In this document: piece by piece, positions 17,542 to 41,820 of the stretch | How positions within the stretch are numbered: the first letter of the stretch is position 1 | Layout: the number at the start of each line of letters is the position of its first letter | Assembly (NCBI GenBank): GCA_965240325.2 | Contig: OZ251232.1 | Coordinates: 744,001-808,000 of the forward strand | Direction of reading: 5' to 3' | Source: Rebecca billardiae RCC1528 | Taxonomy: Eukaryota; Protista; Haptophyta | DNA length: 64,000 nucleotides | Notes under the pieces: generated by a model | What the model was told of the DNA's origin: nothing | What the model saw: only the letters and a program-made list of their open reading frames with translations | Database searches by the model: none | Program-made: the position numbers and the translations under genes

Positions 17542-17583
<42 letters not shown>

Positions 17584-17868: not shown

Positions 17869-17904
<36 letters not shown>

Positions 17905-18066
17905 CCGCCGAGCCCGCCACCGCCACCGTCACCGCCGCCGTCACCGCCGCCATCGCCACCGCCATCGCCGCCACCGAGCCCGCCGCCGCCGTCACCTCCG
18001 CCCAGCCCGCCGCCGTCACCGCCACCGTCACCGCCGCCGTCGCCACCGCCGTCGCCGCCTCCAAGC

Positions 18067-18108
<42 letters not shown>

Positions 18109-18447: not shown

Positions 18448-18482
<35 letters not shown>

Positions 18483-18819
18483 ACCGCCGTCGCCGCCACC
18501 GAGCCCGCCGCCGCCGTCACCTCCTCCGAGCCCACCACCGTCACCGCCACCGTCACCGCCGCCGTCACCGCCGCCGTCGCCACCGCCGAGCCCGCCGCCA
18601 CCATCGCCGCCGCCGTCGCCGCCGCCAACGCCGCCGCCGTCGCCGCCGCCCAGCCCACCACCATCGCCGCCACCGAGCCCGCCACCAAGCCCTCCGCCAC
18701 CGCCGACGCCTCCGCCATCGCCACCGCCGTCGCCGCCACCGAGCCCGCCGCCGCCGCCAGCGCCACCGCCGTCGCCTCCGCCGAGCCCGCCGCCGCTACC
18801 CTCGCCACCGCCCAGCCCG

Positions 18820-18850
<31 letters not shown>

Positions 18851-18915
18851 GGCCACCGCCGTCGCCGCCACCGAGCCCGCCGCCGCCGTCACCTCCTCCG
18901 AGCCTACCGCCGTCA

Positions 18916-18947
<32 letters not shown>

Positions 18948-21900
18948 CTCGCCACCGCCGAGCCCGCCACCGCCACCGTCACCGCCGCCGTCACCGCCGC
19001 CATCGCCACCGCCGTCGCCGCCGCCCAGCCCGCCACCGTCGCCGCCGCCGCCGTCGCCGCCGCCGTCACCGCCGCCGTCACCTCCGCCAACGCTGCCACC
19101 GTCGCCGCCACCCAGCCCGCCACCATCGCCGCCACCAAGCCCGCCACCGGCTCCCTTGCCCCCGCCCTCACCGCCGCCGACAGTGTCGTTGTCGCCCTCG
19201 CCGCCACCAAGCCCACCGCCGCCGCCGTCGCCCCCGCCGTCGCCACCACCGAGCCCGCCGCCGCCGTCTCCTCCACCCAGCCCACCGCCGTCACCGCCAC
19301 CGTCACCGCCGCCGTCGCCACCGCCAACGCCACCACCAAGCCCGCCACCGCCGTTGCCTCCGCCGTCACCGCCGCCAACGCCGCCACCGTCGCCGCCGCC
19401 CAGCCCACCACCGTCGCCGCCGCCGCCGTCACCGCCGCCGTCGCCCCCGCCGTCGCCACCACCGAGCCCGCCGCCGCCGTCACCTCCGCCCAGCCCGCCG
19501 CCGTCGCCACCGCCGTCACCGCCGCCGTCACCACCGCCAACGCCACCACCAAGCCCGCCGCCCCCGTCACCTCCGCCGTCACCACCGCCAACGCCGCCAC
19601 CGTCGCCACCGCCGAGCCCGCCACCATCGCCGCCACCGCCGTCGCCGCCGCCGTCGCCACCGCCGTCGCCACCACCGAGTCCGCCTCCGCCGTCTCCTCC
19701 ACCCAGCCCACCGCCGTCACCGCCACCGTCACCGCCGCCGTCACCACCGCCAACGCCACCACCAAGCCCGCCGCCGCCGTCGCCGCCGCCCAGCCCACCA
19801 CCATCGCCGCCACCAAGTCCTCCGCCATCGCCATCGCCTCCGCCGTCGCCACCGCCAACGCCACCACCGAGCCCGCCACCGCCGTCGCCACCACCGTCAC
19901 CTCCGCCGACGCTGCCGCCGTTTCCGCCGCCAAGCCCGCCACCATCGCCGCCACCGAGCCCGCCACCGGCTCCCTTGCCCCCGCCCTCACCACCACCGGC
20001 AACGTCTTTGTCGCCCTCGCCGCCACCAAGCCCACCGCCGCCGCCGTCGCCCCCGCCATCGCCACCACCGAGCCCGCCACCGCCGTCTCCTCCACCCAGC
20101 CCACCGCCGTCACCGCCACCGTCACCGCCGCCGTCGCCACCGCCAACGCCACCACCAAGCCCGCCGCCGCCGTCGCCTCCGCCGTCACCGCCGCCAACGC
20201 CGCCACCGTCGCCGCCGCCCAGCCCACCACCATCGCCGCCGCCGCCGTCGCCACCGCCGTCGCCCCCGCCGTCGCCACCACCGAGCCCGCCGCCGCCGTC
20301 ACCTCCGCCCAGCCCACCGCCGTCGCCGCCGCCGTCACCGCCGCCGTCACCACCGCCATCACCACCACCGAGCCCGCCGCCGCCATCACCGCCGCCGTCA
20401 CCGCCGCCTACGCCGCCACCGTCGCCGCCGCCCAGCCCACCACCATCGCCGCCGCCGCCGTCGCCGCCGCCGTCGCCACCGCCATCGCCACCACCGAGCC
20501 CGCCACCGCCGTCGCCTCCGCCCAGCCCACCGCCGTCGCCGCCGCCGTCACCGCCGCCGTCACCACCGCCCTCACCACCGCCGAGTCCGCCGCCACCGTC
20601 ACCGCCGCCGTCACCGCCGCCAACGCTGCCACCGTCGCCGCCGCCCAGCCCGCCACCGTTGCCACCACCGAGCCCACCACCACCGCCTTCGCCGCCGCCA
20701 TCGCCGCCGCCATCGCCGCCACCGTCGCCGCCACCCCTACCGCTTCCACCACCACGCACACTGCCGCTGCCACCACCATCACCGCCGAGCCCGCCGCCAC
20801 TGCCACCGCCGTCGCCGCCGCCGTCGCCGCCGCCATCACCACCACCGAGCCCTCCGCCGCCATCACCACCACCGTCGCCGCCCCCACCTGCGCCGCCACC
20901 TTCACCGCCGCCGAGCCCACCGCCGTCGGCACCGCCGAGCCCTCCACCAAGCCCTCCGCCACCGCCGTCGCCGCCACCGTCGCCTCCGCCGTCGCCACCG
21001 CCGTCGCCGCCGCCGCCGTCACCTCCGCCCAGCCCACCGCCGTCACAACCACCGTCACCGCCGCCGTCACCACCGCCATCACCACCACCGAGCCCGCCAC
21101 CGCCGTCACCGCCGCCGTCACCGCCGCCAACGCCGCCACCGTCGCCGCCGCCCAGCCCACCACCATCGCCGCCGCCGCCGTCGCCGCCGCCGTCGCCACC
21201 GCCGTCGCCACCACCGAGCCCGCCGCCGCCGTCACCTCCGCCCAGTCCGCCGCCGTCGCCACCGCCGGCACCGCCGCCGTCACCACCGCCAACACCACCA
21301 CCGAGCCCGCCGCCGCCGTCACCACCGCCGTCACCGCCGCCGACGCTGCCACCGTCGCCGCCGCCCAGCCCACCACCATCGCCGCCACCGAGCCCGCCAC
21401 CGGCTCCCTTGCCCCCGCCCTCACCACCACCGGCAACGTCTTTGTCGCCCTCGCCGCCACCAAGCCCACCGCCGCCGCCGTCGCCCCCGCCATCGCCACC
21501 ACCGAGCCCGCCACCGCCGTCGCCTCCACCCAGCCCACCGCCGTCACCGCCGCCGTCACCGCCGCCGTCACCACCGCCTACGCCACCACCGAGCCCACCG
21601 CCGCCGTTACCGCCGCCGTCACCGCCGCCAACGCCGCCACCGTCGCCGCCGCCCAGCCCGCCACCGTTGCCACCACCGAGCCCGCCACCGCCCTCACCTC
21701 CGCCCAGCCCACCACCGTCGCCGCCACCACCGTCACCGCCGCCGTCACCACCGCCATCACCACCACCGAGCCCGCCGCCGCCGTCACCACCGCCCTCACC
21801 ACCGCCGAGCCCGTCGCCGCCGTCACCGCCGCCGTCACCTCCGCCAACGACGCCACCGTCGCCGCCACCAAGCCCACCACCATCGCCGCCACCGAGCCCG

Positions 21901-24900
21901 CCGCCACCGCCGTCGCCGCCGCCATCGCCGCCGCCATCGCCGCCACCGTCGCCGCCACCTCTACCGCTTCCACCACCACGCACACTGCCGCTGCCACCAC
22001 CATCACCGCCGAGCCCGCCGCCACTGCCACCGCCGTCGCCGCCGCCGTCGCCGCCGCCATCACCACCACCGAGCCCTCCGCCGCCATCACCACCACCGTC
22101 GCCGCCCCCACCTGCGCCGCCACCTTCACCGCCGCCGAGCCCACCGCCGTCGGCACCGCCGAGCCCTCCACCAAGCCCTCCGCCACCGCCGTCGCCGCCA
22201 CCGTCGCCTCCGCCGTCGCCACCGCCGTCGCCGCCGCCGCCGTCACCTCCGCCCAGCCCACCGCCGTCACAACCACCGTCACCGCCGCCGTCACCACCGC
22301 CATCACCACCACCGAGCCCGCCACCGCCGTCACCGCCGCCGTCACCGCCGCCAACGCCGCCACCGTCGCCGCCGCCCAGCCCACCACCATCGCCGCCGCC
22401 GCCGTCGCCGCCGCCGTCGCCACCGCCGTCGCCACCACCGAGCCCGCCGCCGCCGTCACCTCCGCCCAGTCCGCCGCCGTCGCCACCGCCGGCACCGCCG
22501 CCGTCACCACCGCCAACACCACCACCGAGCCCGCCGCCGCCGTCACCACCGCCGTCACCGCCGCCGACGCTGCCACCGTCGCCGCCGCCCAGCCCACCAC
22601 CATCGCCGCCACCGAGCCCGCCACCGGCTCCCTTGCCCCCGCCCTCACCACCACCGGCAACGTCTTTGTCGCCCTCGCCGCCACCAAGCCCACCGCCGCC
22701 GCCGTCGCCCCCGCCATCGCCACCACCGAGCCCGCCACCGCCGTCGCCTCCACCCAGCCCACCGCCGTCACCGCCGCCGTCACCGCCGCCGTCACCACCG
22801 CCTACGCCACCACCGAGCCCACCGCCGCCGTTACCGCCGCCGTCACCGCCGCCAACGCCGCCACCGTCGCCGCCGCCCAGCCCGCCACCGTTGCCACCAC
22901 CGAGCCCGCCACCGCCCTCACCTCCGCCCAGCCCACCACCGTCGCCGCCACCACCGTCACCGCCGCCGTCACCACCGCCATCACCACCACCGAGCCCGCC
23001 GCCGCCGTCACCACCGCCCTCACCACCGCCGAGCCCGTCGCCGCCGTCACCGCCGCCGTCACCTCCGCCAACGACGCCACCGTCGCCGCCACCAAGCCCA
23101 CCACCATCGCCGCCACCGAGCCCGCCGCCACCGCCGTCGCCGCCGCCATCGCCGCCGCCATCGCCGCCACCGTCGCCGCCACCTCTACCGCTTCCACCAC
23201 CACGCACACTGCCGCTGCCACCACCATCACCGCCCAGCCCACCGCCGTCGCCGCCGCCGTCACCGCCGCCGTCACCACCGCCAACACCACCACCGAGCCC
23301 TCCGCCGCCATCACCACCACCGTCGCCGCCCCCACCTGCGCCGCCACCTTCACCGCCGCCGAGCCCACCGCCGTCGGCACCGCCGAGCCCGCCACCAAGC
23401 CCTCCGCCACCGCCGTCGCCGCCGCCGTCGCCCCCGCCGTCGCCACCACCGAGCCCTCCCCCGCCGTCACCTCCGCCCAGACCACCGCCGTCACCGCCAC
23501 CCTCACCGCCGCCGTCACCGCCGCCGACGCCACCACCGAGCCCGCCACCGCCGTCGCCACCGCCCTCACCACCACCGAGCCCGCCGCCGCCGTCACCGCC
23601 ACCGTCACCTCCGCCAACGCTGCCACCGTCGCCGCCGCCAAGCCCGCCACCATCGCCGCCACCGAGCCCGCCACCGGCTCCCTTGCCCCCGCCCTCACCA
23701 CCACCGGCAACGTCGTTGTCGCCCTCGCCGCCACCAAGCCCACCGCCGCCGCCATCGCCGCCGCCGTCGCCACCACCGAGCCCGCCACCGCCGTCGCCTC
23801 CGCCCAGCCCACCGCCGGCATCACCGCCGCCACCGCCGCCGTCACCACCGCCTACGCCACCACCGAGCCCGCCGCCGCCGTCACCGCCGCCGTCACCGCC
23901 ACCAACGCCGCCACCGTCGCCGCCGCCGTTGGCACCGCCGTCGCCACCACCGAGCCCGCCGCCGCCCTTACCTCCGCCCAGCCCTCCACCGTCGCCGCCA
24001 CCACCGTCACCGCCGCCGTCACCACCGCCATCACCACCACCGAGCCCGCCGCCGCCGTCACCACCGCCCTCACCACCGCCGAGCCCGCCGCCGCCGTCAC
24101 CGCCGCCATCACCTCCGCCAACGACGCCACCGTCGCCGCCACCAAGCCCACCACCATCGCCGCCACCGAGCCCGCCGCCACCGCCGTCGCCGCCGCCATC
24201 GCCGCCGCCATCGCCGCCACCGTCGCCGCCACCTCTACCGCTTCCACCACCACGCACACTGCCGCTGCCACCACCATCACCGCCCAGCCCACCGCCGTCG
24301 CCGCCGCCGTCACCGCCGCCATCACCACCGCCAACACCACCACCGAGCCCTCCGCCGCCATCACCACCACCATCGCCACCCCCACCTGCGCCGCCACCTT
24401 CACCGCCGCCGAGCCCACCGCCGTCGGCACCGCCGAGCCCGCCACCAAGCCCTCCGCCACCGCCGTCGCCGCCGCCGTCGCCTCCGCCGTTGCCACCTCC
24501 GAGCCCGCCGCCGCCGTCACCTCCGCCCAGCCCACCGCCGTCACCGCCACCCTCACCGCCGCCGTCACCACCGCCAACGCCACCACCAAGTCCGCCACCG
24601 CCGTCGCCACCGCCCTCGCCACCACCGAGCCCGCCGCCGCCGTCACCACCGCCGTCACCGCCGCCGACGCTGCCACCGTCGCCGCCGCCAAGCCCGCCAC
24701 CATCGCCGCCACCGAGCCCGCCACCGGCTCCCTTGCCCCCGCCCTCACCACCACCGGCAACGTCGTTGTCGCCCTCGCCGCCACCAAGCCCACCGCCGCC
24801 GCCATCGCCGCCGCCGTCGCCACCACCGAGCCCGCCACCGCCGTCGCCTCCGCCCAGCCCACCGCCGTCACCGCCGCCGTCACCGCCGCCGTCACCACCG

Positions 24901-27900
24901 CCAGCGCCACCACCGAGCCCGCCGCCGCCGTCACCGCCGCCGTCACCGCCACCAACGCCGCCACCGTCGCCGCCGCCGTTGGCACCGCCGTCGCCACCAC
25001 CGAGCCCGCCGCCGCCCTTACCTCCGCCCAGCCCACCACCGTCGCCGCCACCACCGTCACCGCCGCCGTCACCACCGCCATCACCACCACCGAGCCCGCC
25101 GCCGCCGTCACCACCGCCGTCACCACCGCCGAGCCCGCCGCCGCCGTCACCGCCGCCATCACCTCCGCCAACGACGCCACCGTCGCCGCCACCAAGCCCA
25201 CCACCATCGCCGCCACCGAGCCCGCCGCCACCGCCGTCGCCGCCGCCATCGCCGCCGCCATCGCCGCCACCGTCGCCGCCACCTCTACCGCTTCCACCAC
25301 CACGCACACTGCCGCTGCCACCACCATCACCGCCCAGCCCACCGCCGTCGCCGCCGCCGTCACCGCCGCCATCACCACCGCCAACACCACCACCGAGCCC
25401 TCCGCCGCCATCACCACCACCGTCGCCGCCCCCACCTGCGCCGCCACCTTCACCGCCGCCGAGCCCACCGCCGTCGGCACCGCCGAGCCCGCCACCAAGC
25501 CCTCCGCCACCGCCGTCGCCGCCGCCGTCGCCTCCGCCGTTGCCACCTCCGAGCCCGCCGCCGCCGTCACCTCCGCCCAGCCCACCGCCGTCACCGCCAC
25601 CCTCACCGCCGCCGTCACCACCGCCAACGCCACCACCAAGTCCGCCACCGCCGTCGCCACCGCCCTCGCCACCACCGAGCCCGCCGCCGCCGTCACCACC
25701 GCCATCACCGCCGCCGACGCTGCCACCGTCGCCGCCGCCAAGCCCGCCACCATCGCCGCCACCGAGCCCGCCACCGGCTCCCTTGCCCCCGCCCTCACCA
25801 CCACCGGCAACGTCGTTGTCGCCCTCGCCGCCACCAAGCCCACCGCCGCCGCCATCGCCGCCGCCGTCGCCACCACCGAGCCCGCCACCGCCGTCGCCTC
25901 CGCCCAGCCCACCGCCGTCACCGCCGCCGTCACCGCCGCCGTCACCACCGCCAGCGCCACCACCGAGCCCGCCGCCGCCGTCACCGCCGCCGTCACCGCC
26001 ACCAACGCCGCCACCGTCGCCGCCGCCGTTGGCACCGCCGTCGCCACCACCGAGCCCGCCGCCGCCCTTACCTCCGCCCAGCCCACCACCGTCGCCGCCA
26101 CCACCGTCACCGCCGCCGTCACCACCGCCATCACCACCACCGAGCCCGCCGCCGCCGTCACCACCGCCCTCACCACCGCCGAGCCCGCCGCCGCCGTCAC
26201 CGCCGCCGTCACCTCCGCCAACGCTGCCACCATCGCGGCCACCAAGCCCACCACCATCGCCGCCACCGAGCCCGCCGCCACCGCCGTCGCCGCCGCCATC
26301 GCCGCCGCCATCGCCGCCACCGTCGCCGCCACCTCTACCGCTTCCACCACCACGCACACTGCCGCTGCCACCACCATCACCGCCGAGCCCGCCGCCATCG
26401 CCACCGCCGTCACCGCCGCCATCACCACCGCCAACACCACCACCGAGCCCTCCGCCGCCGTCACCACCACCGTCGCCGCCCCCACCTGCGCCGCCACCTT
26501 CACCGCCACCGAGCCCACCGCCGTCACCACCGCCGAGCCCGCCACCAAGCCCTCCGCCACCGCCGTCGCCGCCACCGTCGCCTCCGCCGTCGCCACCTCC
26601 GAGCCCGCCGCCGCCGTCTCCTCCGCCCAGCCCACCGCCGTCGCCGCCGCCGTCACCGCCGCCGTCACCACCGCCATTACCACCACCGAGCCCGCCACCG
26701 CCGTCTCCGCCGCCGTCACCGCCGCCAACGCCACCACCGTCGCCGCCGCCCAGCCCACCACCATCGCCGCCGCCACCGTCGCCGCCGCCGTCGCCACCGC
26801 CCTCACCGCCACCGAGCCCGCCGCCGCCGTCACCGCCGCCATCACCTCCGCCAACGCTGCCACCGTCGCCGCCGCCAAGCCCACCACCGTCGCCGCCACC
26901 GGGCCCGCCGTCACCGCCGTCGCCGCCGCCATCGCCGCCGCCATCGCCGCCACCGTCGCCGCCACCTCTACCGCTGCCACCACCACGCACACTGCCGCTG
27001 CCACCACCGTCACCGCCAAGCCCGCCGCCGTCACCGCCGCCGTCACCGCCGCCGTCACCACCGCCAACACCACCACCGAGCCCTCCGCCGCCATCACCAC
27101 CACCGTCGCCACCCCCACCTGCGCCGCCACCTTCACCGCCGCCGAGCCCACCGCCGTCGCCACCGCCGAGCCCGCCACCAAGCCCTCCGCCACCGCCGTC
27201 GCCGCCGCCGTCGCCCCCGCCGTCGCCACCACCGAGCCCGCCGCCGCCGTCTCCTCCGCCCAGCCCACCGCCGTCGCCTCCGCCGTCGCCGCCGCCGTCA
27301 CCACCGCCAACGCCACCACCGAGCCCGCCACCGCCGTCACCGCCACCGTCACCGCCGCCAACGCCGCCACCGTCGCCGCCGCCCAGCCCACCACCATCGC
27401 CGCTGCAGCCGTCGCCGCCGCCGTCGCCTCCGCCGTCGCCACCACCGAGCCCGCCGCCGCCGTCACCTCCGCCCAGCCCGCCGCCGTCGCCGCCGCCGTC
27501 ATCGCCGCCGTCACCACCGCCCTCACCACCGCCGAGCCCGCCGCCGCCGTCACCGCCGCCGTCACCGCCGCCAACGCCGCCACCGTCGCCGCCGCCCAGC
27601 TCACCACCATCGCCACCACCCAGTCCGCCGCCATCACCGCAGCCACCGCCATTGCCACCGCCGTCTCCGCCACCAAGCCCGCCGCCTCCGCCCTCCCCTC
27701 CGCCCTCACCGCCTCCGAGCCCGCCACCGCCACCGGCACCCCCGCCGTCGCCGCCCCCGTCGGCGCCGCCGAGCCCACCGCCGAGCCCACCGCCCGGTGG
27801 ACCTGCGCCGCCACCATCGCCGCCGCCGTCACCGCCACAAAATCCGCCACTGCCTCCCGCGCCGCCACCGTTGCCACCGCCGAGCCCACCGCCGCCGCCA

Positions 27901-29906
27901 ACGCCGCCACCCTCACCACCGCCAAGTCCACCACCGCTGCCATCGCCGCCACCTTCGCCGCCACCGAGCCTTCCTCCTTCGCCTTCGCCGCCACCGTCGC
28001 CGCCGCCAAGTCCGTCTCTGCCGCCCTCACCACCACCAATGCCACCGCCAAGCCCGCCACCACCACCGTCGCCTCCGCCCATGCCACCACCCTCGCCACC
28101 GCCACTGCCGGCGCCGCCGCCATCGCCGCCGCCATCGCCACCGCCAACGCCATCGCCGCCGCCGTCACCGCCACCAAGTCCGCCACCGCCACCACCATCA
28201 CCACCACCGACCTCGCCGCCGCCACCGCCGCCGTCGCCGCCACCGTCGTCGCCGCCACCGCCACCACCGTCGCCGCCGCCGAGCTCGCCGCCGCCACCAC
28301 CACCGTCACCGCCGCCGTCGTCACCGCCGCCACCGCCCCCCAGCCCACCACCGAGCTCTCCGCCGCCCCCACCACCGTCGCCACCACCGTCGCCGCCGCC
28401 AAGCTCACCGCCGCCACCACCACCGTCGCCGCCACCGAGCTCGCCGCCGCCGCCGCCACCGTCGCCACCACCATCGTCGCCGCCGCCGCCGCCGCCCAGC
28501 CCACCGCCCAGCTCGCCGCCACCGCCACCACCGTCACCGCCGCCGAGCTCGCCGCCGCCACCACCACCGTCGCCGCCTCCATCGCCGCCGCCGAGCCCGC
28601 CGCCGTCGCTGCCACCGTCGCCACCACCGTCCCCACCACCAAGCCCTCCGCCACACCCGCCGCCGCCGCCAGCGCCACCGCCCAGCCCCCCACCGAGCTT
28701 GCCACCACCGCCATTGCCACCACCAAGCCCGCCACCGAGCCCGCCACCACCGCCGTCCCCGCCGCCGAGCCCGCCACCAAGCCCTCCTCCGCCTCCTGCG
28801 CCGCCGCCTAGCCCGCCGCCGAGCCCGCCGCCGCCGCCGTCACCACCGCCACGCCCACCGCCAAGTCCACCACCACCGCCAGTGCCGCCGCCCAGCCCCC
28901 CACCGAGCTTGCCACCACCGCCATCACCACCACCAAGCCCGCCACCGAGCCCGCCCCCACCGCCCTCGCTGCCGCCGAGCCCGCCACCAAGCCCTCCTCC
29001 GCCTCCTGCGCCGCCGCCCAGCCCGCCGCCCAACCTGCCTCCGCCACCATCGCTGCCGCCACCTCCACCGCCACGCCTGCCACCACCGCCACCTCCCCCT
29101 TTCCCACCTCCGAGCTTGCCACCTCAGCCACCACCATCGTTGCCACCGTCTCCGCCACCGCTGCCGCCGCCGAATCCGCCCCCTTCGGCCCCGCCAGGCC
29201 CTCCACCGCGCCCACCGTCCTCGCCTCCCGCGCAGCCGCCCGCACCGCCCGAGCCGCCGGCGCCGCCGCCGGCGCCGCCATCTCCTCCGTCGCCCCCGCC
29301 GGCCCCTTCGTCCCCGCTGCCGCCGCCTACACCCCCGCCCTCGCCGCCGCCGCCAGCACCGCCCCCGTCGCCGCCCTCGCCGCCGCCCGACCTCACCCGG
29401 GAGGACTACGTCGAGCTGAAGCTCAACCTGACCGGCCTGGACGTGGACGCCGTCCTTGAGCAGCTGCTCGAGGCGATCGCTGGAGTGGCAGGGATCGACG
29501 TCGGCCGGCTGTCGATCGAGGACGTGATCCCGCTGCCGAACGGCGGCTCGTGCGTCATCATCAAGGCGACGGCCAACCCGGACGCGGGCGAGACGCTCAC
29601 TGACCTCGCAAGCGTGCTGGGCACGGCCTCCACCTCGCCGCAGCCTTCTGACGGGCTGGAAGGAACGCTGGGCGTCGAGGTTGTGGACGTACGCTGGCAC
29701 ATGCCGCCATCGTCACCGCCCTCGCCGCCCTTAGAGCCCTCGCCGCCGTCGCCGCCGTCACCACCGGCCTCGCCGCCCTCGCCACCCTTGCCGCCGTCGC
29801 CGCCGTCGCCGCCCTCACCGCCGCCCTCGCCGCCCTCGCCGCCCGCGCCGCCCGCGCCGCCGTCACCTCCGCCCTCGCCGCCATCACCACCGCCCTCGCC
29901 ACCTGT

Positions 29907-29942
<36 letters not shown>

Positions 29943-30082
29943 ACCACCGCCCTCGCCGCCGTCGCCACCGTCGCCGCCCACACCGCCGTCACCACCGCCC
30001 TCGCCGCCCTCACCACCGCCCTCGCCGCCCGTGCCGCCCTCGCCGCCCTCGCCGCCGTCACCACCGCCCTCGCCGCCGTCAC

Positions 30083-30113
<31 letters not shown>

Positions 30114-30259
30114 ACCGTCACCACCGCCCTTGCCGCCCTCGCCACCCTCGCCACCGTCGCCGCCGTCACCACCGCCATCGCCGCCATCACCACCGCCCTC
30201 GCCGCCCGTGCCACCCTCGCCGCCCTCGCCGCCATCAGCACCGCCCTCGCCGCCGTCGC

Positions 30260-30290
<31 letters not shown>

Positions 30291-30466
30291 ACCGTCGCCG
30301 CCCTCACCGCCGCCCTCGCCGCCCTCCTCACCGCCCTCGCCGCCTGTGCCGCCCTCGCCGCCCTCACCGCCGTCACCACCGCCCTCGCCGCCGTCACCAC
30401 CGCCGTCGCCGCCCGTGCCGCCCTCGCCGCCCTCGCCGCCCTCAGCACCGCCCTCGCCGCCCTCAC

Positions 30467-30515
<49 letters not shown>

Positions 30516-33349
30516 ACCGCCTTCGCCGCCCTCACCACCGCCCGTGCCGCCGTCGCCGCCCTCGCCGCCGGCACCGCCGGCACCGCCGCCCTCGCCGCCC
30601 TCACCACCGCCCTCGCCGCCGGTGCCGCCCTCGCCGCCCTCGCCACCGTCACCGCCGCCCTCGCCGCCGTCACCACCGCCGTCGCCGCCCGTGCCGCCCT
30701 CGCCACCGTCGCCGCCGTCACCACCGCCCTCGCCGCCGTCACCACCGCCCTTGCCGCCCTTGCCGCCCTCGCCGCCCTCACCGCCGTCATCACCGCCCTC
30801 GCCGCCCTCGCCACCGCCCTCGCCGCCCGTGCCGCCGTCGCCGCCATCGCCGCCGTCACCACCGCCGTCGCCGCCCTCACCACCGCCGTCGCCGCCCGTG
30901 CCGCCCGCGCCACCGTCGCCGCCGTCACCACCGCCCTCGCCGCCGTCACCACCGCCCTTGCCGCCCGCACCGCCCTCGCCGCCCTCACCGCCGTCATCAC
31001 CGCCCTCGCCGCCCTCGCCACCGCCCTCGCCACCTGTGCCGCCGTCGCCGCCGTCGCCGCCCTCACCGCCGCCCTCGCCGCCCTCACCACCGCCCTCACC
31101 GCCTGTGCCGCCCTCGCCGCCATTGCCGCCCTCGCCACCGCCCTCGCCGCCCTCACCACCGCCGTCGCCGCCATCGCCGCCATCGCCACCGCCCTCGCCA
31201 CCTGTGCCGCCGTCGCCACCGTCCCCGCCGTCATCACCGCCCTCGCCGCCGTCACCACCGCCCTTGCCGCCTGTGCCGCCCTCGCCGCCATCGCCGCCCT
31301 CGCCACCGCCCTCGCCGCCGTCACCACCGCCATCGCCGCCTGTGCCGCCGTCACCGCCGTCGCCGCCTTCACCGCCGCCCTCGCCGCCCTCACCACCGCC
31401 CTCGCCGCCTGTGCCGCCCTCGCCGCCATCGCCGCCCTCGCCACCGCCCTCGCCGCCGTCACCACCGCCATCGCCGCCTGTGCCGCCTTCGCCGCCGTCG
31501 CCGCCGTCACCGCCGCCGTCGCCGCCGTCACCGCCGCCCTTGCCGCCCGTGCCGCCGTCGCCGCCCTCACCGCCATCATCACCGCCCTCGCCGCCCTCAC
31601 CACCGCCCTTGCCGCCCGCACCGCCCTCGCCGCCCTCACCGCCGTCATCACCGCCCTCGCCGCCCTCACCACCGCCCTCGCCGCCCGTGCCGCCCTCGCC
31701 ACCGTCGCCGCCGTCACCACCGCCCTCGCCGCCGTCACCACCGCCCTTGCCGCCCGCACCGCCCTCGCCGCCCTCGCCGCCGTCATCACCGCCCTCGCCG
31801 CCCTCGCCACCGCCCTCGCCACCCGTGCCGCCGTCACCGCCGTCGCCGCCTTCACCGCCGCCCTCGCCGCCCTCACCACCGCCCTCGCCGCCTGTGCCGC
31901 CCTCGCCGCCATCGCCGCCCTCGCCACCGCCCTCGCCGCCGTCACCACCGCCATCGCCGCCTGTGCCGCCTTCGCCGCCGTCGCCGCCGTCACCGCCGCC
32001 GTCGCCGCCGTCACCGCCGCCCTTGCCGCCCGTGCCGCCGTCGCCGCCCTCACCGCCATCATCACCGCCCTCGCCGCCCTCACCACCGCCCTCGCCGCCC
32101 GTGCCGCCGTCGCCGCCGTCGCCGCCCTCGCCACCGCCCTCGCCGCCGTCACCACCGCCCTCGCCGCCCGTGCCGCCCTCGCCGCCGTCGCCGCCGTCAC
32201 CACCACCCTCGCCGCCCTCACCACCGCCCTCGCCACCCTCACCTCCGTCGCCGCCCTCGCCGCCGTTACCACCGCCCTCGCCGCCCTCACCACCGCCCTT
32301 GCCGCCCTCGCCGCCGTCGCCGCCCTCTCCGCCCTCGCCACCGCCCTCGCCGCCCTCGCCACCGCCCTCGCCGCCCGTGCCGCCCTCACCGCCATCGCCG
32401 CCGTCACCGCCGCCCTCGCCGCCGTCACCGCCGCCCTCGCCACCCGTGCCGCCCTCGCCGCCCTCGCCGCCCTCACCACCGCCCTCGCCGCCGTCACCGC
32501 CGCCCTTGCCGCCCGTGCCGCCGTCGCCGCCCTCACCGCCATCATCACCGCCCTCGCCGCCCTCACCACCGCCCTCGCCGCCCGTGCCGCCGTCGCCGCT
32601 GTCGCCGCCCTCGCCACCGCCCTCGCCGCCGTCACCACCGCCCTTGCCGCCAGTGCCGCCATTGCCGCCATCGCCACCGTCATCACCGCCCTCGCCGCCC
32701 TCGCCACCGCCCTCGCCACCTGTGCCGCCGTCGCCGCCGTCGCCGCCCTCACCGCCGCCCTCGCCGCCCTCACCACCGCCCTCACCGCCTGTGCCGCCAT
32801 CGCCGCCATCGCCGCCATCGCCACCGCCATCGCCGCCGTCACCACCGCCCTCGCCGCCCTCGCCGCCCGCGCCGCCCGCGCCGCCGTCACCACCGCCCTC
32901 GCCGCCGTCGCCACCGCCCTCACCGCCTGTGCCGCCTTCGCCGCCCTCGCCGCCATCGCCACCGCCCTCGCCGCCGTCACCACCCTTGCCGCCGTCGCCG
33001 CCCTCGCCGCCATCACCACCACCCTCACCGCCATCACCACCGCCATCGCCACCCGTGCCGCCCTCGCCGCCCTCGCCGCTCTCTCCGCCGCCATCGCCGC
33101 CATCGGCTCCGCCCTCGCCGCCCTTGCCGCCATCGCCGCCCTCACCGCCCTCACCACCGCCCTCGCCGCCCTCGCCGCCCGTGCCGCCCTTGCCGCCCTC
33201 GCCTCCGTCACCACCGCCCTCGCCGCCCTCTCCACCGCCCTCGCCGCCCGTGCCGCCCTCGCCGCCCTCGCCGCCGTCACCACCGCCCTCGCCGCCGTCA
33301 CCACCGCCCTCGCCGCCCTTGCCGCCCTCGCCGCCCTCGCCGCCGTCAC

Positions 33350-33402
<53 letters not shown>

Positions 33403-33565
33403 GCGCCACCGCCGTCACCGCCCTCACCACCACCCTCGCCGCCCGTGCCGCCCTCGCCGCCCGTGCCGCCGTCACCGCCGCCCTCGCCGCCCTCACCACC
33501 GCCCTCGCCGCCCGTGCCGCCCTCGCCACCCTCACCGCCATCATCACCGCCCTCGCCACCCTCAC

Positions 33566-33611
<46 letters not shown>

Positions 33612-33705
33612 ACCGCCGCCCTCGCCACCCTCACCGCCGCCCTCGCCGCCCTCGCCCCCGTCGCCGCCGTCGCCTCCCTCACCGCCGCCCTCGCCACCCT
33701 CGCCA

Positions 33706-33738
<33 letters not shown>

Positions 33739-34462
33739 GTGCCGCCGTCACCTCCGCCCTCGCCGCCCTCATCACCGCCCTCGCCGCCTGTGCCACCGTC
33801 GCCTCCCTCGCCGCCTTCACCGCCGCCCTCGCCGCCCTCACCACCGCCCTCGCCGCCCGTGCCGCCCTCGCCGCCCTCTCCGCCGTCACCGCCGCCCTCG
33901 CCACCCTCACCACCGCCCTCGCCGCCCTCGCCGCCGTCGCCGCCCGTGCCGCCGTCACCACCGCCCTCGCCGCCGTCACCACCGCCCTCGCCGCCCGTGC
34001 CGCCGTCGCCACCCTCGCCGCCGTCGCCACCGCCCTCGCCGCCCTCACCACCGCCCTCGCCGCCAGTGCCACCGTCGCCGCCCTCGCCGCCGTCACCGCC
34101 GCCCTCGCCGCCCTCACCACCGCCCTCGCCGCCCGTGCCGCCGTCGCCGCCCTCGCCGCCATCGCCACCGCCCTCGCCGCCCTCACCACCGCCCTCGCCG
34201 CCATCGCCGCCCTCGCCGCCATCGCCGCCGTCATCACCGCCGTCGCCGCCCTCGCCACCGCCCTCGCCGCCAGTGCCACCGTCGCCGCCCTCGCCGCCGT
34301 CGTCACCGCCCTCGCCGCCCTCATCCCCGCCCTCGCCGCCCGTGCCACCGTCGCCTCCCTCGCCGCCTTCACCGCCGCCCTCGCCGCCCTCACCACCGCC
34401 CTCGCCGCCCGTGCCGCCCTCGCCGCCCTCACCGCCATCATCACCGCCGTCGCCACCCTCAC

Positions 34463-34497
<35 letters not shown>

Positions 34498-34993
34498 GTG
34501 CCGCCGTCACCTCCGCCCTCGCCGCCCTCATCACCGCCCTCGCCGCCCGTGCCACCGTCGCCTCCCTCGCCGCCTTCACCGCCGCCCTCGCCGCCCTCAC
34601 CACCGCCCTCGCCGCCCGTGCCGCCGTCGCCGCCCTCGCCGCCGTCATCACCGCCCTCGCCGCCCGTGCCACCGTCGCCTCCCTCGCCGCCTTCACCGCC
34701 GCCCTCGCCGCTCTCACCACCGCCCTCGCCGCCCGTGCCGCCCTCGCCGCCCTCACCGCCATCATCACCGCCGTCGCCACCCTCACCACCGCCCTCGCCG
34801 CCCTCGCCGCCCGCGCCGCCCGTGCCGCCGTCACCTCCGCCCTCGCCGCCCTCATCACCGCCCTCGCCGCCCGTGCCACCGTCGCCTCCCTCGCCGCCTT
34901 CACCGCCGCCCTCGCCGCTCTCACCACCGCCCTCGCCGCCCGTGCCGCCCTCGCCGCCCTCACCGCCATCATCACCGCCGTCGCCACCCTCAC

Positions 34994-35028
<35 letters not shown>

Positions 35029-35838
35029 GTGCCGCCGTCACCTCCGCCCTCGCCGCCCTCATCACCGCCCTCGCCGCCCGTGCCACCGTCGCCACCCTCG
35101 CCGCCGTCACCGCCGCCCTCGCCGCCCTCACCACCGCCCTCGCCGCCCGTGCCGCCGTCGCCACCCTCGCCGCCGTCGCCACCGCCCTCGCCGCCCTCAC
35201 CACCGCCCTCGCCGCCATCGCCGCCATCGCCGCCATCGCCGCCGTCATCACCGCCGTCGCCGCCCTCGCCACCGCCCTCGCCGCCAGTGCCACCGTCGCC
35301 GCCCTCGCCGCCGTCGTCACCGCCCTCGCCGCCCTCACCACCGCCCTCGCCGCCCGTGCCGCCCTCGCCGCCCTCGCCGCCGTCACCGCCGCCCTCGCCG
35401 CCCTCACCACCGCCCTCGCCACCTGTGCCACCGTCGCCGCCGTCGCCGCCGTCACCGCCGCCCTCGCCGCCGTCACCACCGCCCTCGCCGCCTGTGCCGC
35501 CCTCGCCGCCCTCGCCGCCGTCACCACCGCCCTCGCCGCCGTCACCGCCGCCCTCGCCGCCAGTGCCGCCTTCGCCACCGTCGCCGCCATTACCGCCGCC
35601 CTCGCCGCCCTCGCCACCGTCCTCGCCGCCCGTGCCGCCTTCGCCGCCCGTGCCGCCCTCGCCGCCGCCCTCGCCGCCCTCGCCACCGCCCTCGCCGCCC
35701 GTGCCGCCTTCGCCGCCCGTGCCGCCGTCGCCGCCGCCCTCGCCGCCCTCACCACCGCCCTCGCCGCCCGTGCCGCCGTCGCCGCCGTCGCCGCCCTCAC
35801 CGCCGCCCTCGCCGCCCTCACCACCGCCCTCGCCGCCA

Positions 35839-35874
<36 letters not shown>

Positions 35875-36292
35875 CCCTCGCCGCCGTCACCACCGCCCTC
35901 GCCGCCATCGCCCCCATCGCCGCCGTCGCCGCCGTCACCACCGCCCTCGCCGCCCTCACCGCCGCCCTCGCCGCCCGTGCCGCCCTCGCCGCCCTCACCA
36001 CCGCCCTCGCCGCCGTTTCCGCCCTCGCCGCCCTCGCCGCCGTCGCCACCGCCCTCGCCGCCCTCACCACCGCCCTCGCCGCCGTTTCCGCCCTCGCCGC
36101 CGTCGCCGCCGTCACCGCCGCCCTCGCCGCCCTCGCCACCGCCCTCGCCGCCCGTGCCGCCCTCGCCGCCCTCGCCGCCGTCACCGCCGCCCTCGCCGCC
36201 CTCGCCACCGCCCTCGCCGCCCGTGCCGCCCTCGCCGCCCTCGCCGCCCTCGCCACCGCCCTCGCCGCCCTCACCACCGCCCTCGCCGTCCC

Positions 36293-36338
<46 letters not shown>

Positions 36339-39300
36339 ACCACCGCCCTTGCCGCCCTCGCCGCCCTCGCCGCCCCCACCACCACCCTCGCCTTCGCCGC
36401 CGCCCAACTTCGAGCTGTACGACTTTGCTGCCATCTATCTCAACACAACCGGCGGCGTGGATGTCGACATCGACGTCGTTCTCTCCTCAGTCACGGACAC
36501 GCTGGGTGTGGATCCGGAGCGTGTCACTGTGCACGCCGTGGACGAGGTGAGCGCCGACGAGACTCGCGTCATCATCCGCGTGCGCAACGACCCATCGCTT
36601 GGCGACTCGCCAGTGGACGTCGTGGCAGGCCTGTCTCCGAGGCCTGAGCCTACTCCGACACCGCTGGAGACTCTCGCCGACACCCTGGGACTGCCTGTGT
36701 TCGAGCTGCCCAGGGCGTTCGAGCCGCCGTTTCCCCCGCCGTCGCCGCCGTCTCCCGCGCCGCCCCCCTTCCCGCCACCCCAGCCCCCTCCTCCCCTGCC
36801 GCCCCCGTCGCCGCCATCGCCGCCCCCTCAATTCCACATCGAGGAGTACCTTGCGCTCACGCTCAACCTGAGCGCGCCCGAGCTCGACCAGCTGTCGGAC
36901 GGGCTGCTGGAGACGGTGGCCGCCGAGCTGGGCGTCAACGAGTCGCGGCTTTCGTACGAGCTGGTCGACGACGTGGGCGATGGTTCGATCAAGGTCGTGA
37001 TCAAGGTCACCACGGACCCCGAGGCTGGGGAGACACCTGCTGACCCCGTTGGCAGCCTCACGCCGAACAATGGGCCGGGCACGCCCACGTCGCTCGACGA
37101 GCTGTCTGAATGGCTGGGCGTGCCCGTGGTGGCGTCACCGCACAACCACATGCCGCCGTCACCACCGCCTGTCCCGCCATCTCCCCCGCCGCCCCCGTCG
37201 CCGCCCTCGCCGCCGCCCGACCTCACCCGGGAGGACTACGTCGAGCTGAAGCTCAACCTGACCGGCCTGGACGTGGACGTCGTCCTCGAGCAGCTGCTCG
37301 AGACGATCGCTGGAGTGGCAGGGATCGACGTCGGCCGGCTGTCGATCGAGGACGTGATCCCGCTGCCGAACGGCGGCTCGAACGTCATCATCAAGGCGAC
37401 GGCCAACCCGGACGCGGGCGAGACGCTCACTGACCTCTCTCAGCTGCTCAAGCCTCCGGCGCCGGTGCCTCCCGAGCCGGCGCCGCTCGACGCGCTGAGC
37501 GAGGCCCTCGGCTTCACGCTGGTGACCACTCGCAAGCATGTACCTCCGTCACCGCCACCGGCGCCGCCTTCGCCGCCGGCGCCGCCATCGCCGCCGCCGA
37601 GGCTGGGGGAGGAGGAGTACTTGGCGCTGTACCTCAACCTGAGCGCCCTCGAGTTTGTGAGCTCGCCCAACATCACGCTGCTCGACGCGCTGGCCAACGA
37701 GCTGGGCATCGACGAGACTCGGCTGACGTTCGAGGTTGTGGCCGACCAGGGCGACGGCACGACCAAGGTGGTGATCAAGGTCACCACGGACCCCGAGGCT
37801 GGGGAGACACCTGCTGACCCCGTTGGCAGCCTCACGCCGAACAACGGGCCGGGCACGCCCACGTCGCTCGACGAGCTGTCTGAGACGCTGGGCGTGCCGT
37901 TGGCGGCGACACCGCACAACCACGTGCCGCCGTCGCCACCGCCATCGCCGCCGTCATCGCCGCCATCGCCGCCCTCGCCGCCATCGCCGCCTGCCCCGCC
38001 TGCCCCGCCGCCCGACCTGAGCGTCGAGGAGTACGTGGCGCTCACGCTCAACCTGACCGCTGCGCAGCTGGACGAGGCCGCGTTGGACGATCTGCGCGAT
38101 GCCGTCGCCGCCGAGCTGGACGTGGACCCCTCGCGCGTGTCGATCGAGACGGTCGACGAGCAGGGCGACGGCACGACGACGGTCGTGATCAAGGTCACCA
38201 CGGACCCCGAGGCTGGGGAGACACCTGCTGACCCCGTTGGCAGCCTTACGCCGAACAATGGGCCGGGCACGCCCACGTCGCTCGACGAGCTGTCGGAGAC
38301 GCTGGGCGTGCCGGTGGTGTCGACGCCGTACAACCACGTGCCGCCGTCGCCACCGCCATCGCCGCCATCGCCGCCATCGCCGCCATCGCCGCCTTCTCCG
38401 CCGCCCGACTTCAGCACCCAGGAGTACGTGGCGCTCACGCTCAACCTGACCGCTGCGCAGCTGGACGAGGCCGCGTTGGACGATCTGCGCGATGCCGTCG
38501 CCGCCGAGCTGGGCTTGAACACGTCGCGCGTGTCGATCGAGACGGTCGACGAGCAGGGCGACGGCACAACGACGGTCGTGATCAAGGTCACCACTGACCC
38601 CGAGGCTGGGGAGACACCTGCTGACCCCGTTGGCAGCCTCACGCCGAACAATGGGCCGGGCACGCCCACGTCGCTCGACGAGCTGTCGGAGACGCTGGGC
38701 GTGCCGGTGGTGTCGACGCCGTACAACCACGTGCCGCCATCATCTCCACCCGCGCCGCCCTCGCCGCCCGCGCCGCCGCCCTCGCCCGCGCCGCCGCCCA
38801 ACCGGGAGCTCTTCGACTTCATCGCCGTGTACGTCAACTCGACCGAGGCCGCGTTCAGCGAGCTGTCGATCGACTTCATCGCCCACCTGGCGGAGACGCT
38901 CGGGATCGACCCAGACAGACTTGCTGTGCACGTGGTCACCGAGCTGAGCGACACGGTGACACGCGTCGTCATCCGCGTGCGCACCGACCCCACGGCCGGT
39001 GACCCGCCAGTGGACACGGTTGGGACGCTGCTGCAGGGTGCCGGCGCAGGTGGCCCTTCCGCGCTGGAGCAGCTGAGCGCTCGGCTCGGTCTGCCGGTGC
39101 TGGAGGTGCCGACAGCCTTCGAGCCGCCCTCGCCGCCGCCCTCGCCGCCCTCGCCGCCGTCGCCGCCGCCCAACCTGCGCGAGGAGGAGTACGTTGCGCT
39201 CTCGATCAACCTCACGCGCGCAGAGTTTGGCGGGCTGCTCACCGAGGTGATGCTGGAGAACATGGCGGAGCGGCTGGAGATCGACCGCGAGCGCGAGTCG

Positions 39301-39499
39301 ATCGAGGTCGTCTTCGAGGACGTCGGCGGCACCATCGTCGCGGTCGTCAAGATCCGCGTGCGCGTGGGCGAGGACTTTGCGGACCCGGTCGGGCGGCTCA
39401 CGCCGCTCAACGGGCCGGACGCACCGCGCTCGCTCGAGGAGCTCTCCGAGTGGCTGGGCGTGCCCGTGCTCGCCATCTACTCGCACGTGCCGCCGTCGC

Positions 39500-39536
<37 letters not shown>

Positions 39537-41820
39537 CCCGCCGCCCTCGCCGCCCTCGCCCCCGCCCCGTCTGGTGGCTGAGGACTATCTCGCGCTCACT
39601 CTCGCCCTCAGCCCGGAGCAGTTCGAGGCCGCGCAGGAGGAGCTGCTCGGCAGGCTCGCGGGGCAGTTTGGCATCGACCCGTCGCGCCTGTCGATCGAGT
39701 CGACGGCGCCGCGGGCCGACGGCACCGTCAACGTGGTCATCAAGCTCTCCACCAACCTCTTCGCCGGCGAGACGCGCTTCGAGCTGAGCGCGCGGCTGCT
39801 CGCGCTCACGCGCTCGGGCGGGGGCGGCGCTGGCTGCGCCAACGTCACCAGCGGCACAGACGCCCTGCCCGCCGGCACTGGCGTGAACTGCACAAACAGC
39901 ACGCAGCTGCCGCTCACCGATGAGCTCAGCACGCTGCTGGGCGTGCCGGTCAGCGCGGAGCCGTACAGCCACGTGCCGCCCTCGCCGCCGCCCGCGCCGC
40001 CCTTCCCGCCGCCCAACCGCGTGGGCGAGGAGTACGTGGCGCTCGCACTCAACCTGCCGTGGTACGAGGCCGCCGAGGGCATGGGCGCGCTGCTCGCCTC
40101 GCTCGCGAGGTGCTTGGGAGCCTCAGAGAGCCGCTTCTCGCTCGAGATGCTGCAGGAGCTCAGCGCGGGGACGACCAAGGTGGTCGTCAAGCTGACGACA
40201 GACCTCAGCGGGGGCGAGGCGCCTGTGAGGCCTGCCGAGAGGCTCACACCGGACAACGGTCCGGGCACGCCGGCGTCGCTCGAGGACTTGTCTGCGTGCC
40301 TCGGCGTGCCCGTCACCGACGAGCCGTACAACCACTGGCCGCCCTCGCCGCCGCCTTCGCCGCCGCCGCCGCCGCTGGCGCCTGCCCAACCGCCGGCCGC
40401 GCCGCCCGCCCCGCCCCCGCCACAAGCAGACCCAGACCTGCTGGCGGCGCCCGGCGCCGGCACCTTGCCTGGGGGCTTGGGCCAGGGCAGCGAGGTGAGC
40501 ACGGAGGAGGACAGCGTGCTCACGTTCGGTGAGATCATCGAGCGGATCCGCGAGGCGCTGCGCGACCCCGACACGGGCACGGTGACCCTCGCCGGCATGC
40601 TGTCGGGCGTCACGTGCTGCCTCTGCTGCTGCTGGCTGTGGCTCTTTGCGCTCGTCGTGCGGCGCAGGCGCAGGAAGGAGCGCGAGCTGCTCAAGCTCGA
40701 ATCGATCGTCTCGCTCGGGCCGATCGGCGGCATGCGCGTGGACGTGCGCCCGAAGCTCGCATCCAGCGGGCTCGGCGCCCCCCCGATTGTCGCCGCCAAG
40801 CCGCTCAAGGTCCCGCGCCCGATCGTCGACTTCCCGTGGGCGTTCAGGCTCGGGCTGGGGAGGCGCCCGTCGACGGCCGGCGGCCCGTCCGACCTGCGCG
40901 ACGTCGGCCCGGAAGGGATGGAGGGCGGCGTCGCGGTTCAGATGGTCGACCCGCCCGTGCACCCGCTCGGCCAGCCGCGCCGTGGTTCGGCCTTTTTCCC
41001 GAGCACGCGGCTGGCTGGTGGGGCGGGCGTCAAGGAGCCCCTCGTCGGCACAAGCGTCACGGAGCCGCTCGTCGGCGCGGGCGCCGGCGCGGGCGCCGGC
41101 GCGGGCGCGGGCGCGGCACCGCCGGCCGGCCGGCGTGGGCCGCGCTTCCCCTGGAGCCGCGCGGAGCCGCCAGCCAAGCCCCAGCGCCGGCCGAGCTCCG
41201 GCCTCCGAGTGCTGCAACAGCCGGGCGGGGGCAGCACCATCGGGCGCATTGAGAAGCCACCAGCGCCGCCCATGCCCGCGCCGGGCGTGCAGGGCCAGAC
41301 CACGCCTCAGCCCAGGGATCCGTTCCATCGCCGACCACCCCCAGCTCCGCGTTCACCCCCGCCCAAGGCGAGCAAAAGCGCCGCCGCCGCCGCCGACAAG
41401 GGCCCGGCCGCGTTGCCCGCGACGGCCGCAGCCGCCGCCGCGGGCCCGACTGGCTTGCCCGCGACGGGCGGCGGCGGCCTTGCGGTGCCGCTCGCGGCCC
41501 TGCGCTCACCGAGGAGCGCGCGCGGCTCCGAAGCGTCCGTCAGCACGCCGTCGCGTGCCGGGGTCGGTGGCGGCGGCGTGCCGCCTGCAGCGGCCCGTTC
41601 GCCGCGATGGAGCGCGCGCAGATCAGACGCGTCCGCCAGCACGGTGCTGTCACTTTCGCCCGCGGCCGGTGGAGGTGACGCGGCCGCGGGCGGCACGGCG
41701 TCGCCTGCGAATGCGTCACTGCCAGTGCCACCAGCCCGCTCGCCGCGAAGGATGATGCGTCTGTCGCAGTCGAGCCTCGACAGCAGGTCGTCAGCATCGC
41801 CACGCGCGGGCCGACAGTAG
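12691..41820 (+). CDS. Giant (9709 aa) proline-rich extensin/mucin-like type-I membrane glycoprotein with 11 repeated globular modules
   Basis: Single ORF with no stops. Putative signal LALTVLGAVCFG (alternative ATG 12730). SPPP repeats ~12820-29388 and SPP/SPPV repeats ~29701-36405. Modules at ~29389, 36406, 36829, 37219, 37600, 38014, 38407, 38800, 39172, 39568, 40015. TM 40582-40659 followed by RRRRRKER and a Pro/Ser-rich tail. Third codon positions vary freely in the repeats. Confidence 0.9.
17131..18760 (+). repeat. Coding higher-order repeat, period 525 bp (175 aa)
   Basis: Marker PPPPPT (ACG) recurs at 17131, 17656, 18181 and 18706. Confidence 0.85.
20400..27200 (+). repeat. Coding higher-order repeats, periods 1224, 1224, 1050, 1050, 1050, 633 bp (boundaries approximate)
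   Basis: Marker LPLPPPRTLPL (CGCACA) at 20755, 21979, 23203, 24253, 25303, 26353 and 26986. Confidence 0.85.

Follow-up and report, generated by a model that had tools for sequence, protein, structure and literature searches.

MUC16 (CA125) carries about 56 SEA domains (PMC4456727), and domains of this type bear N-glycans and unfold under force, an unfolding thought to protect the membrane (PMC13643018). The β2-β3 loop of the fold is the site of self-cleavage in MUC1 and the furin cut site in Notch and GPR126 (PMC6954182). Self-cleavage takes place at the motif G|S[V/I]VV in a reaction that depends on strain at Gly-Ser (PMC13643018), and an extra glycine that relaxes the loop abolishes it in SEA and SEAL domains (PMC10327162). 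The site predicted in MUC16 proved to be uncleaved (PMC4456727). Here we describe a gene in a window of 64,000 nucleotides from the haptophyte Rebecca billardiae RCC1528 (GenBank assembly GCA_965240325.2, contig OZ251232.1, positions 744,001 to 808,000). Read at the largest scale, the gene is a single plus-strand frame at 12691-41820 of the window that runs for 9,709 codons without a stop and encodes a protein of 61% proline and 19% serine, in which eleven copies of a module of about 108 residues are set.

These modules are probably non-cleaving, SEA-like beads of a mucin-like surface filament, of which MUC16 would be the nearest known design. The eleven copies would represent an unnamed, lineage-restricted SEA-type ferredoxin-like domain (β1-α1-β2-β3-α2-β4) and each would be a folded bead, in most cases N-glycosylatable, of a giant surface glycoprotein of type I. 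The signal peptide would be followed by a free, headless polyproline filament of (SPPP)n, about 5,500 residues long; one bead, module 1, would join this filament to a second rod of 2,230 residues, and a further ten, spaced by Pro-rich linkers, would lead from the second rod to the only transmembrane helix, beyond which a disordered tail would lie in the cytosol. The conserved Asp/Gly-Gly at the β2-β3 turn would then be a structural two-residue hairpin turn and not a catalytic site, and the intact modules may serve as stiff, protease-resistant spacers that unfold under load and spare the membrane anchor, as in the MUC16 SEA array.

The likeness to MUC16 is that many SEA-fold beads and glycosylatable linkers alternate in the stretch that separates the lone transmembrane helix from an extended glycoprotein domain of great length; MUC16 SEA domains are also among the structural matches described below, and their uncleaved predicted site offers a further parallel. 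The two proteins differ in that no sequence relationship between them is detectable, the extended part is of extensin type, (SPPP)n, in the alga and a Ser/Thr-rich mucin domain in MUC16, and the algal filament appears headless, with one bead embedded between two rods, in a haptophyte host. MUC1-type SEA domains (PF01390) share with the algal modules the order of strands and helices and, in most copies, a hydroxyl residue directly after Gly at the β2-β3 hairpin, whereas the algal modules have no Pfam match, lack G|S[V/I]VV and do not conserve the nucleophile. The ferredoxin-like domain of Nup54, which Pei and Grishin in 2017 reportedly listed as a divergent SEA domain, is the top structural match, leads the Foldseek rows and is the only recurrent weak match among PDB sequences, but it belongs to an intracellular nuclear-pore protein, occurs there as a single copy outside any glycosylation context, and its sequence match is not significant. 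A SEA-like fold just outside the membrane is also found in giant adhesion and receptor proteins, namely in the membrane-adjacent domains (MADs) PCDH15 MAD12 and CDH23 MAD28, CELSR1, the Notch heterodimerization domain (HD) and the IA-2/phogrin ectodomain (structural alignment Z 7-9.6). In those proteins the domain occurs once and has a specific partner or a furin site, whereas the algal arrays range from 7 to over 100 copies, and the hairpin loop of the algal modules showed no furin-type site. Extensins, the wall proteins of Chlamydomonas and Volvox, and agglutinins contain Ser-Pro3/4 polyproline-II rods interrupted by globular domains. Both rods of the present protein consist of Ser-Pro(3-4) repeats of this extensin type and likewise stand beside globular domains; unlike the plant and green-algal hydroxyproline-rich glycoproteins, which are secreted wall proteins, the present protein would be membrane-anchored, is far longer, and has globular domains that are SEA-like.

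From N- to C-terminus, the frame comprises a signal-peptide-like start, rod 1, module 1, rod 2, modules 2-11, a juxtamembrane segment, a predicted transmembrane helix and a tail:

12691..41820, + strand: whole gene of a putative type I membrane protein; 9,709 codons plus the stop codon in one stop-free frame
12691..12819, + strand: signal-peptide-like N-terminus, as read from the sequence by eye; Arg-rich n-region, hydrophobic LALTVLGAVCF, then QHA before the rod
12820..29388, + strand: rod 1, (SPPP)n, 5,523 residues, 74% Pro and 20% Ser; 12-nt base period with higher-order repeats
29389..29709, + strand: module 1, type A, alone between the rods; GGSCVII, with GS at 29545-29550 (G53-S54)
29716..36405, + strand: rod 2, 2,230 residues, 68% Pro and 27% Ser; 69-nt (23-residue) period containing SPP, SPPP and V, about 97 copies
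36406..36723, + strand: module 2, type B; turn SADET, no Gly
36829..37152, + strand: module 3, canonical type C; GSIKVVI, the only copy with its Gly-Ser (G52-S53, nt 36982-36987) exactly at the two-residue turn; model confidence 94.9
37219..37542, + strand: module 4, type A; GGSNVII, with GS at 37375-37380; first 73 codons near-identical to module 1
37600..37926, + strand: module 5, type C; turn GDGTT
38014..38340, + strand: module 6, type C; turn GDGTT; 393-nt tandem unit with module 7
38407..38733, + strand: module 7, type C; 94% identity to module 6
38800..39123, + strand: module 8, type B; turn SDTVT, no Gly
39172..39489, + strand: module 9; matches by position the third-from-last module of the contig 36 gene (81%) and the contig 3 gene (59%) and the second-from-last of the contig 21 gene (79%)
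39568..39975, + strand: module 10; insert of about 28 residues with three sequons and two Cys; matches the second-from-last module of the contig 36 and contig 3 genes
40015..40338, + strand: module 11; matches the last module of the contig 36, 21 and 3 genes (64-67%)
40426..40800, + strand: juxtamembrane segment and anchor cassette; 35-42% identity to the contig 3, 36 and 21 genes
40588-40659, + strand: single predicted transmembrane helix with six Cys (CC, then CCC); RRRRRK stop-transfer signal directly after it
40660..41817, + strand: tail, on the predicted cytosolic side; about 385 residues, low complexity

A scan of the frame for low-proline segments returned exactly eleven, of 106-136 residues, the first starting at nt 29389 and the last ending at nt 40338; the number and limits of the modules given in an earlier note on this DNA are thereby confirmed. 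Modules 2-11 are separated by Pro-rich linkers of 13-35 residues. Aligned over 108 columns, the copies show 37-94% identity to module 6. When the whole genome (72 Mb in 41 contigs, the window being contig 15, 744001-808000) was searched with a profile made from the eleven modules, every copy was recovered with E 1e-33 to 1e-48, and the family is therefore not a product of chance. Eight giant frames of this genome carry 316 or more near-full modules.

An N-glycosylation sequon had been noticed at the same place in most copies, and N-x-S/T does occupy module position 13 in nine of the eleven, the exceptions being module 10 (LALS) and module 11 (NLP). In the predicted structure of module 3, Asn13 is at the end of β1, and the Ser/Thr at position 15 falls just ahead of helix α1. 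Across the 316 family modules the Ser/Thr of the sequon is general; since Asn is kept in 88 of them, the position-13 sequon appears to be a feature of the present gene and some paralogues and not of the whole family. The insert of module 10 (about 39800-39920) sits in the β3-α2 loop, and of the two modules that lack the position-13 sequon, only module 10 compensates in such a way.

The fold guessed in the earlier note, β-α-β-β-α-β of SEA or ferredoxin-like type, held up in AlphaFold2 models of single modules 3 and 1. Module 3, which was run with 28 family members, gave a predicted local distance difference test score (pLDDT) of 94.9 and a predicted template modelling score (pTM) of 0.86, with strands at residues 4-12, 41-50 and 53-62, helices at 16-34 and 89-96, a long ordered loop before the second helix and a short β4 at the end. 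The model of module 1 has the same order of elements at pLDDT 79.4. Exhaustive structural alignment against 48,161 representative PDB chains gave SEA-type domains at all of ranks 1-23 (Z 6.8-10.1), and the first unrelated fold below them was PheRS at Z 6.7. The top match was the ferredoxin-like domain of Nup54 (Z 10.1, 94 residues aligned, root-mean-square deviation 3.0), followed by the membrane-adjacent domain of CELSR1 (Z 9.6), the MADs of PCDH15 and CDH23 (Z 8.5), a chain of the dystrophin-glycoprotein complex (Z 7.9), MUC16 SEA5 and the SEA domain of 1ivz (both Z 7.4; MUC16 SEA domains together Z 7.3-7.5), IA-2 (Z 7.2) and Notch2 HD (Z 7.0); IA-2/phogrin and EpCAM are also within this set.

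Foldseek alone returned no match at E <= 0.001, its weak rows being led by Nup54, and a profile search of PDB sequences found Nup54 at E 0.12-0.41, which is not significant. A tandem PCNA construct that topped the latter search was dismissed as noise, its score being made up of three stretches of 6.6 bits each. In a protein-atlas search the nearest cluster consisted of haptophyte fragments, and the SEA (PF01390) cluster appeared at a score of 0.79, which is a lead only. PF01390 was not listed for single modules at E <= 10, nor for the 28 family members at E <= 1, and Pfam searches with single modules gave scattered sub-threshold matches and no family. The ten-module array matched DUF7036 (PF23041) with 36.1 bits and the KIAA0319 C-terminal domain (PF23620) with 29.3 bits against a cut-off of 27, single modules reaching 16-17 bits. 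These two matches are probably artefacts of score summing, as control arrays score as high for unrelated families: in an hmmscan of three arrays from contigs 37, 36 and 16 (L034, L039 and L046), Glucokinase reached 56 bits, Ribosomal_S24e 55 and RHH_3 52, with no single stretch above the Pfam cut-off and no match to DUF7036 or KIAA0319_C. Because all three controls match plainly unrelated families, summed whole-sequence scores on such repeats cannot be trusted. The models support a SEA-like fold, while membership of the Pfam SEA family is rejected. The predicted setting is also that of SEA domains, for in the topology read from the sequence the modules would be extracellular, beside a glycosylatable extended region and near a transmembrane anchor.

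A Gly followed by Ser or Thr had been placed by the earlier note at the predicted β2-β3 hairpin, and the pair is indeed at or beside the turn in nine of the eleven modules. Modules 1, 4 and 3 read GGSCVII, GGSNVII and GSIKVVI there, six modules have G-T, and modules 2 and 8 have no Gly. In the models, consensus-type modules have a tight two-residue D-G turn and modules 1 and 4 a looser loop, although strain is not readable from a predicted model. Module 3, with D51-G52 as the turn and S53 opening β3, is the only copy in which G|S is predicted to stand in the right place; in modules 1 and 4, a four-residue loop, L-P-N-G, would put G53-S54 within the start of β3, and in the profile alignment their Ser falls one column after the consensus position. 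The GS of these two modules counts as one event and not two, because they share a near-identical tract of about 248 bp (29360-29607 and 37190-37437) with five differences and sharp breakpoints. The tract takes in the linker end and the first 73 codons of each module, whereas their final thirds show no sequence relationship. This pattern suggests gene conversion or partial copying over 7.8 kb in the recent past.

Of the 316 modules of the genome, 83% retain the turn Gly, and the residue after it is T in 37%, L in 23%, S in 9%, G in 9% and A in 8%, with L, G, A, D, E and V together accounting for about 52%. Sorted by class, 29 modules have G-S, 99 have G-T, 135 have G and another residue, and 53 have no Gly, so that a hydroxyl or thiol nucleophile is not conserved at this position across the family. 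The first modules of the contig 36, 21 and 3 genes, which are the best matches of module 1, carry the turns GDGAS, GDGAS and DDGAA, and relatives from other organisms have G-G, G-V or G-R. Neither the 9,709-residue protein nor any of the 316 modules contains the motif G|S[V/I]VV. A looser motif of G-S with three aliphatic residues occurs in nine modules, in helix α1 every time and never in the hairpin.

Six of the eight giant frames are 21,132, 14,737, 11,362, 9,711, 7,955 and 3,216 residues long; the two shorter ones have 4,859 residues with six modules and 2,984 with one. All modules found in the genome lie within intact frames. In the 21,132-residue frame on contig 37 (C37:42001-86500), no fewer than 109 modules form strict super-repeats of two and four, and the residue after the turn Gly in this array is mostly Leu or Gly. 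Modules 9, 10 and 11 find their best matches in the last modules of the genes on contigs 36, 21 and 3, as module 1 does in their first. These three genes (C36:566574-569927, L052; C21:866807-870154, L053; C3:2126755-2130075, L051) and the window gene (39172-40800) are four paralogues with a common order of last modules followed by the anchor cassette, which after the contig 21 array lies at 868307-868654. The arrays of the four anchor-sharing genes count 7, 11, 45 and 93 modules. To judge from this arrangement, the paralogues keep one frame of first module, last modules and anchor, and the middle appears to grow independently by tandem duplication. The ratio of nonsynonymous to synonymous substitution rates (dN/dS) between corresponding modules is 0.27-0.98.

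Outside this genome, a profile search of 1.84 billion cluster representatives returned 13 proteins at E <= 0.001, of which only two (P0001 and P0002) are clear family members. Matches from elsewhere include a four-module metagenome fragment and an 85-residue transcript fragment of Pavlova gyrans, the latter at most about 53% identical to any copy in the present genome. A narrow-alignment scan of metagenome contigs gave no relative. In two further matches (P0003 and P0012), only β1-α1-β2 aligns to the family (hhalign probability 63%). Each is a metagenomic type I membrane protein in which ephrin-receptor-like Cys repeats and then a Thr-rich mucin stretch precede four modules and the transmembrane helix. 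Their hairpin reads R-R-R-L-L-G, then S, G or N, then A-V-Q-V, which is nearer to the animal SEA site than any module in the present genome, yet variable.

At the polyproline II geometry of 0.31 nm per residue, rod 1 would be about 1.7 micrometres long if wholly in this conformation, and rod 2 about 0.7 micrometres if extended. The order of parts suggests a type I topology with a free, headless filament. Although the rods are repetitive, the part of the frame that encodes modules, anchor and tail (5.4 kb, 72% GC) is not, and the probability that it stays free of stops by chance is P about 8e-13. Very high GC content is known for Pavlovales (PMC8379373), and the GC-richness of this genome, taken together with the haptophyte matches of the module family, fits a pavlovophyte. 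Other phases over rod 1 are also open for more than 5,500 residues (12528-29033 on the minus strand, 5,501 residues, and 12776-29419 on the plus strand); such frames are artefacts, since low-complexity DNA so rich in C does not allow stop codons to form. The six Cys of the predicted transmembrane helix are possible palmitoylation sites. A Pfam scan of the tail of about 385 residues found no domain, and towards its end (about 41400-41817) are three R-S-P-R ... R-x-S-x-(A/S)-S motifs that resemble repeated basophilic kinase sites. Among ten neighbouring frames tested, the sole Pfam match was that of an upstream frame at 6617-8332 on the minus strand, which contains ankyrin repeats (Ank_2, E 3e-11).

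The earlier note had proposed that selected modules self-cleave. Here modules 1, 3 and 4, or any other with G-S/T in the hairpin, would cut themselves by an N-to-O acyl shift as the MUC1 SEA domain does, the two chains would stay joined non-covalently, and force would release them and shed the proline arm. The G-S or G-T pairs in nine modules, in or beside the turn of the loop at which SEA, Notch and GPR126 domains are cleaved (PMC6954182), speak for this proposal, as do the tight turn of module 3, where Ser is the first β3 residue in an in-register I-x-V-x-I pattern, and the position of module 1, where a cut would free rod 1. We nevertheless consider it quite unlikely. The motif is absent from the protein and from all 316 modules; in modules 1 and 4 the GS is out of register, preceded by a loop of four residues that include Gly, and relaxation of that kind abolishes cleavage (PMC10327162); the nucleophile is conserved neither in paralogous modules at the same position, nor across the family, nor in foreign relatives; and a site prediction made in like manner for MUC16 proved uncleaved (PMC4456727). 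As far as the sequences go, self-cleavage is without positive support, and the modules most likely stay intact in vivo. D-G and N-G are, moreover, ordinary formers of two-residue hairpin turns, and β-branched Thr is favoured at the start of a strand. The division into cleavable GS and uncleavable GT that the earlier note implied seems not well founded either, for Thr or Cys can reportedly replace Ser in MUC1 (a result ascribed to Levitin et al. 2005). We regard as very unlikely a variant in which the tight Asp-Gly-Thr/Ser hairpin of the canonical modules would be a working non-canonical cleavage site and the stalk a series of non-covalently joined SEA-like links parting one by one under load. 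If true, micrometre-long proline filaments would be shed, and this would be a second, independent case of SEA-type autoproteolysis outside animals, with a different motif.

The modules could instead be binding modules that organise a surface layer, by associating side by side, by holding a membrane partner as cadherin MAD12 holds LHFPL5, or by attaching scale or coat material. Several of the top structural neighbours are the membrane-adjacent domains of PCDH15, CDH23 and CELSR1, the long β3-α2 loop (D-P-x-A-G-E ... L-T-P-x-N-G-P-G-T-P) ranks with the best conserved regions of the module and has a high-confidence model, and the membrane-proximal modules stand in the same order in four paralogous genes. 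We hold this role to be doubtful, as the analysis identified no partner, pocket or interface, and most copies are recent tandem duplicates with high dN/dS, which fits spacers better than specific binders. Somewhat more credible, though still improbable, and compatible with any of these functions, is that the fold is a convergent, ferredoxin-like invention of haptophytes that shares no ancestry with metazoan SEA, as has been proposed for bacterial SEAL. The lack of a significant sequence link to Pfam SEA or any other family points that way, as do the mere 13 database proteins that match the profile and the fact that β-α-β-β-α-β is among the commonest small folds. Ancestry shared with SEA is favoured by the 23 best structural matches, which are all SEA-type and not RRM, ACT or other ferredoxin-like families, by the SEA-like context (extracellular, beside a heavily glycosylatable rod and close to the membrane), and by the weak but concordant sequence matches to Nup54. 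Finally, the frame might be no working gene but a decaying pseudogene, or an artefact that low-complexity repeats caused in the assembly, given that C-rich DNA holds other frames open, that dN/dS is high and that the gene is known from its sequence alone. We regard this as highly improbable: the non-repetitive 3' part is free of stops, signal peptide, single transmembrane helix and positive-inside signal form a coherent whole, four paralogues keep the same order of cassettes, the modules of the genome are all in intact frames, and a relative, Pavlova gyrans, transcribes the family.

Several observations weigh against our preferred reading of the modules as intact, SEA-like beads. Structural matches at 12-19% identity cannot separate homology from convergence, a best Z of 7-8 is common for any small α/β model, and single modules match no Pfam family. 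The turn is tight, of two residues, and bears G-T or G-S in seven of the eleven modules, and an N-to-O acyl shift driven by a hydroxyl nucleophile is possible in principle. The high dN/dS reflects either weak constraint and fast evolution or a dS depressed by extreme GC content at third codon positions, and evidence of transcription is limited to the Pavlova gyrans fragment with its identity of about 53% or less. On balance, intact beads remain the probable account, and their mechanical role, suggested by analogy with the MUC16 array, would be that of spacers that yield under load.

In summary, most known SEA domains belong to animal mucins, receptors and proteases; beyond these there is one intracellular relative, the divergent Nup54, and one convergent look-alike in bacteria. 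In this haptophyte, a SEA-like fold would stand between a huge glycosylatable filament and the membrane, in at least 316 copies distributed over eight giant genes, and the module family is almost without relatives in 1.84 billion database clusters. Either the SEA fold is far older than animals as a juxtamembrane element, or the design of filament, folded beads and anchor arose twice. The window provides the example of a complete gene, from putative signal peptide to cytosolic tail, with its predicted membrane anchor, and it may hint at the molecules underlying the fine surface or flagellar coat that pavlovophyte cells bear.

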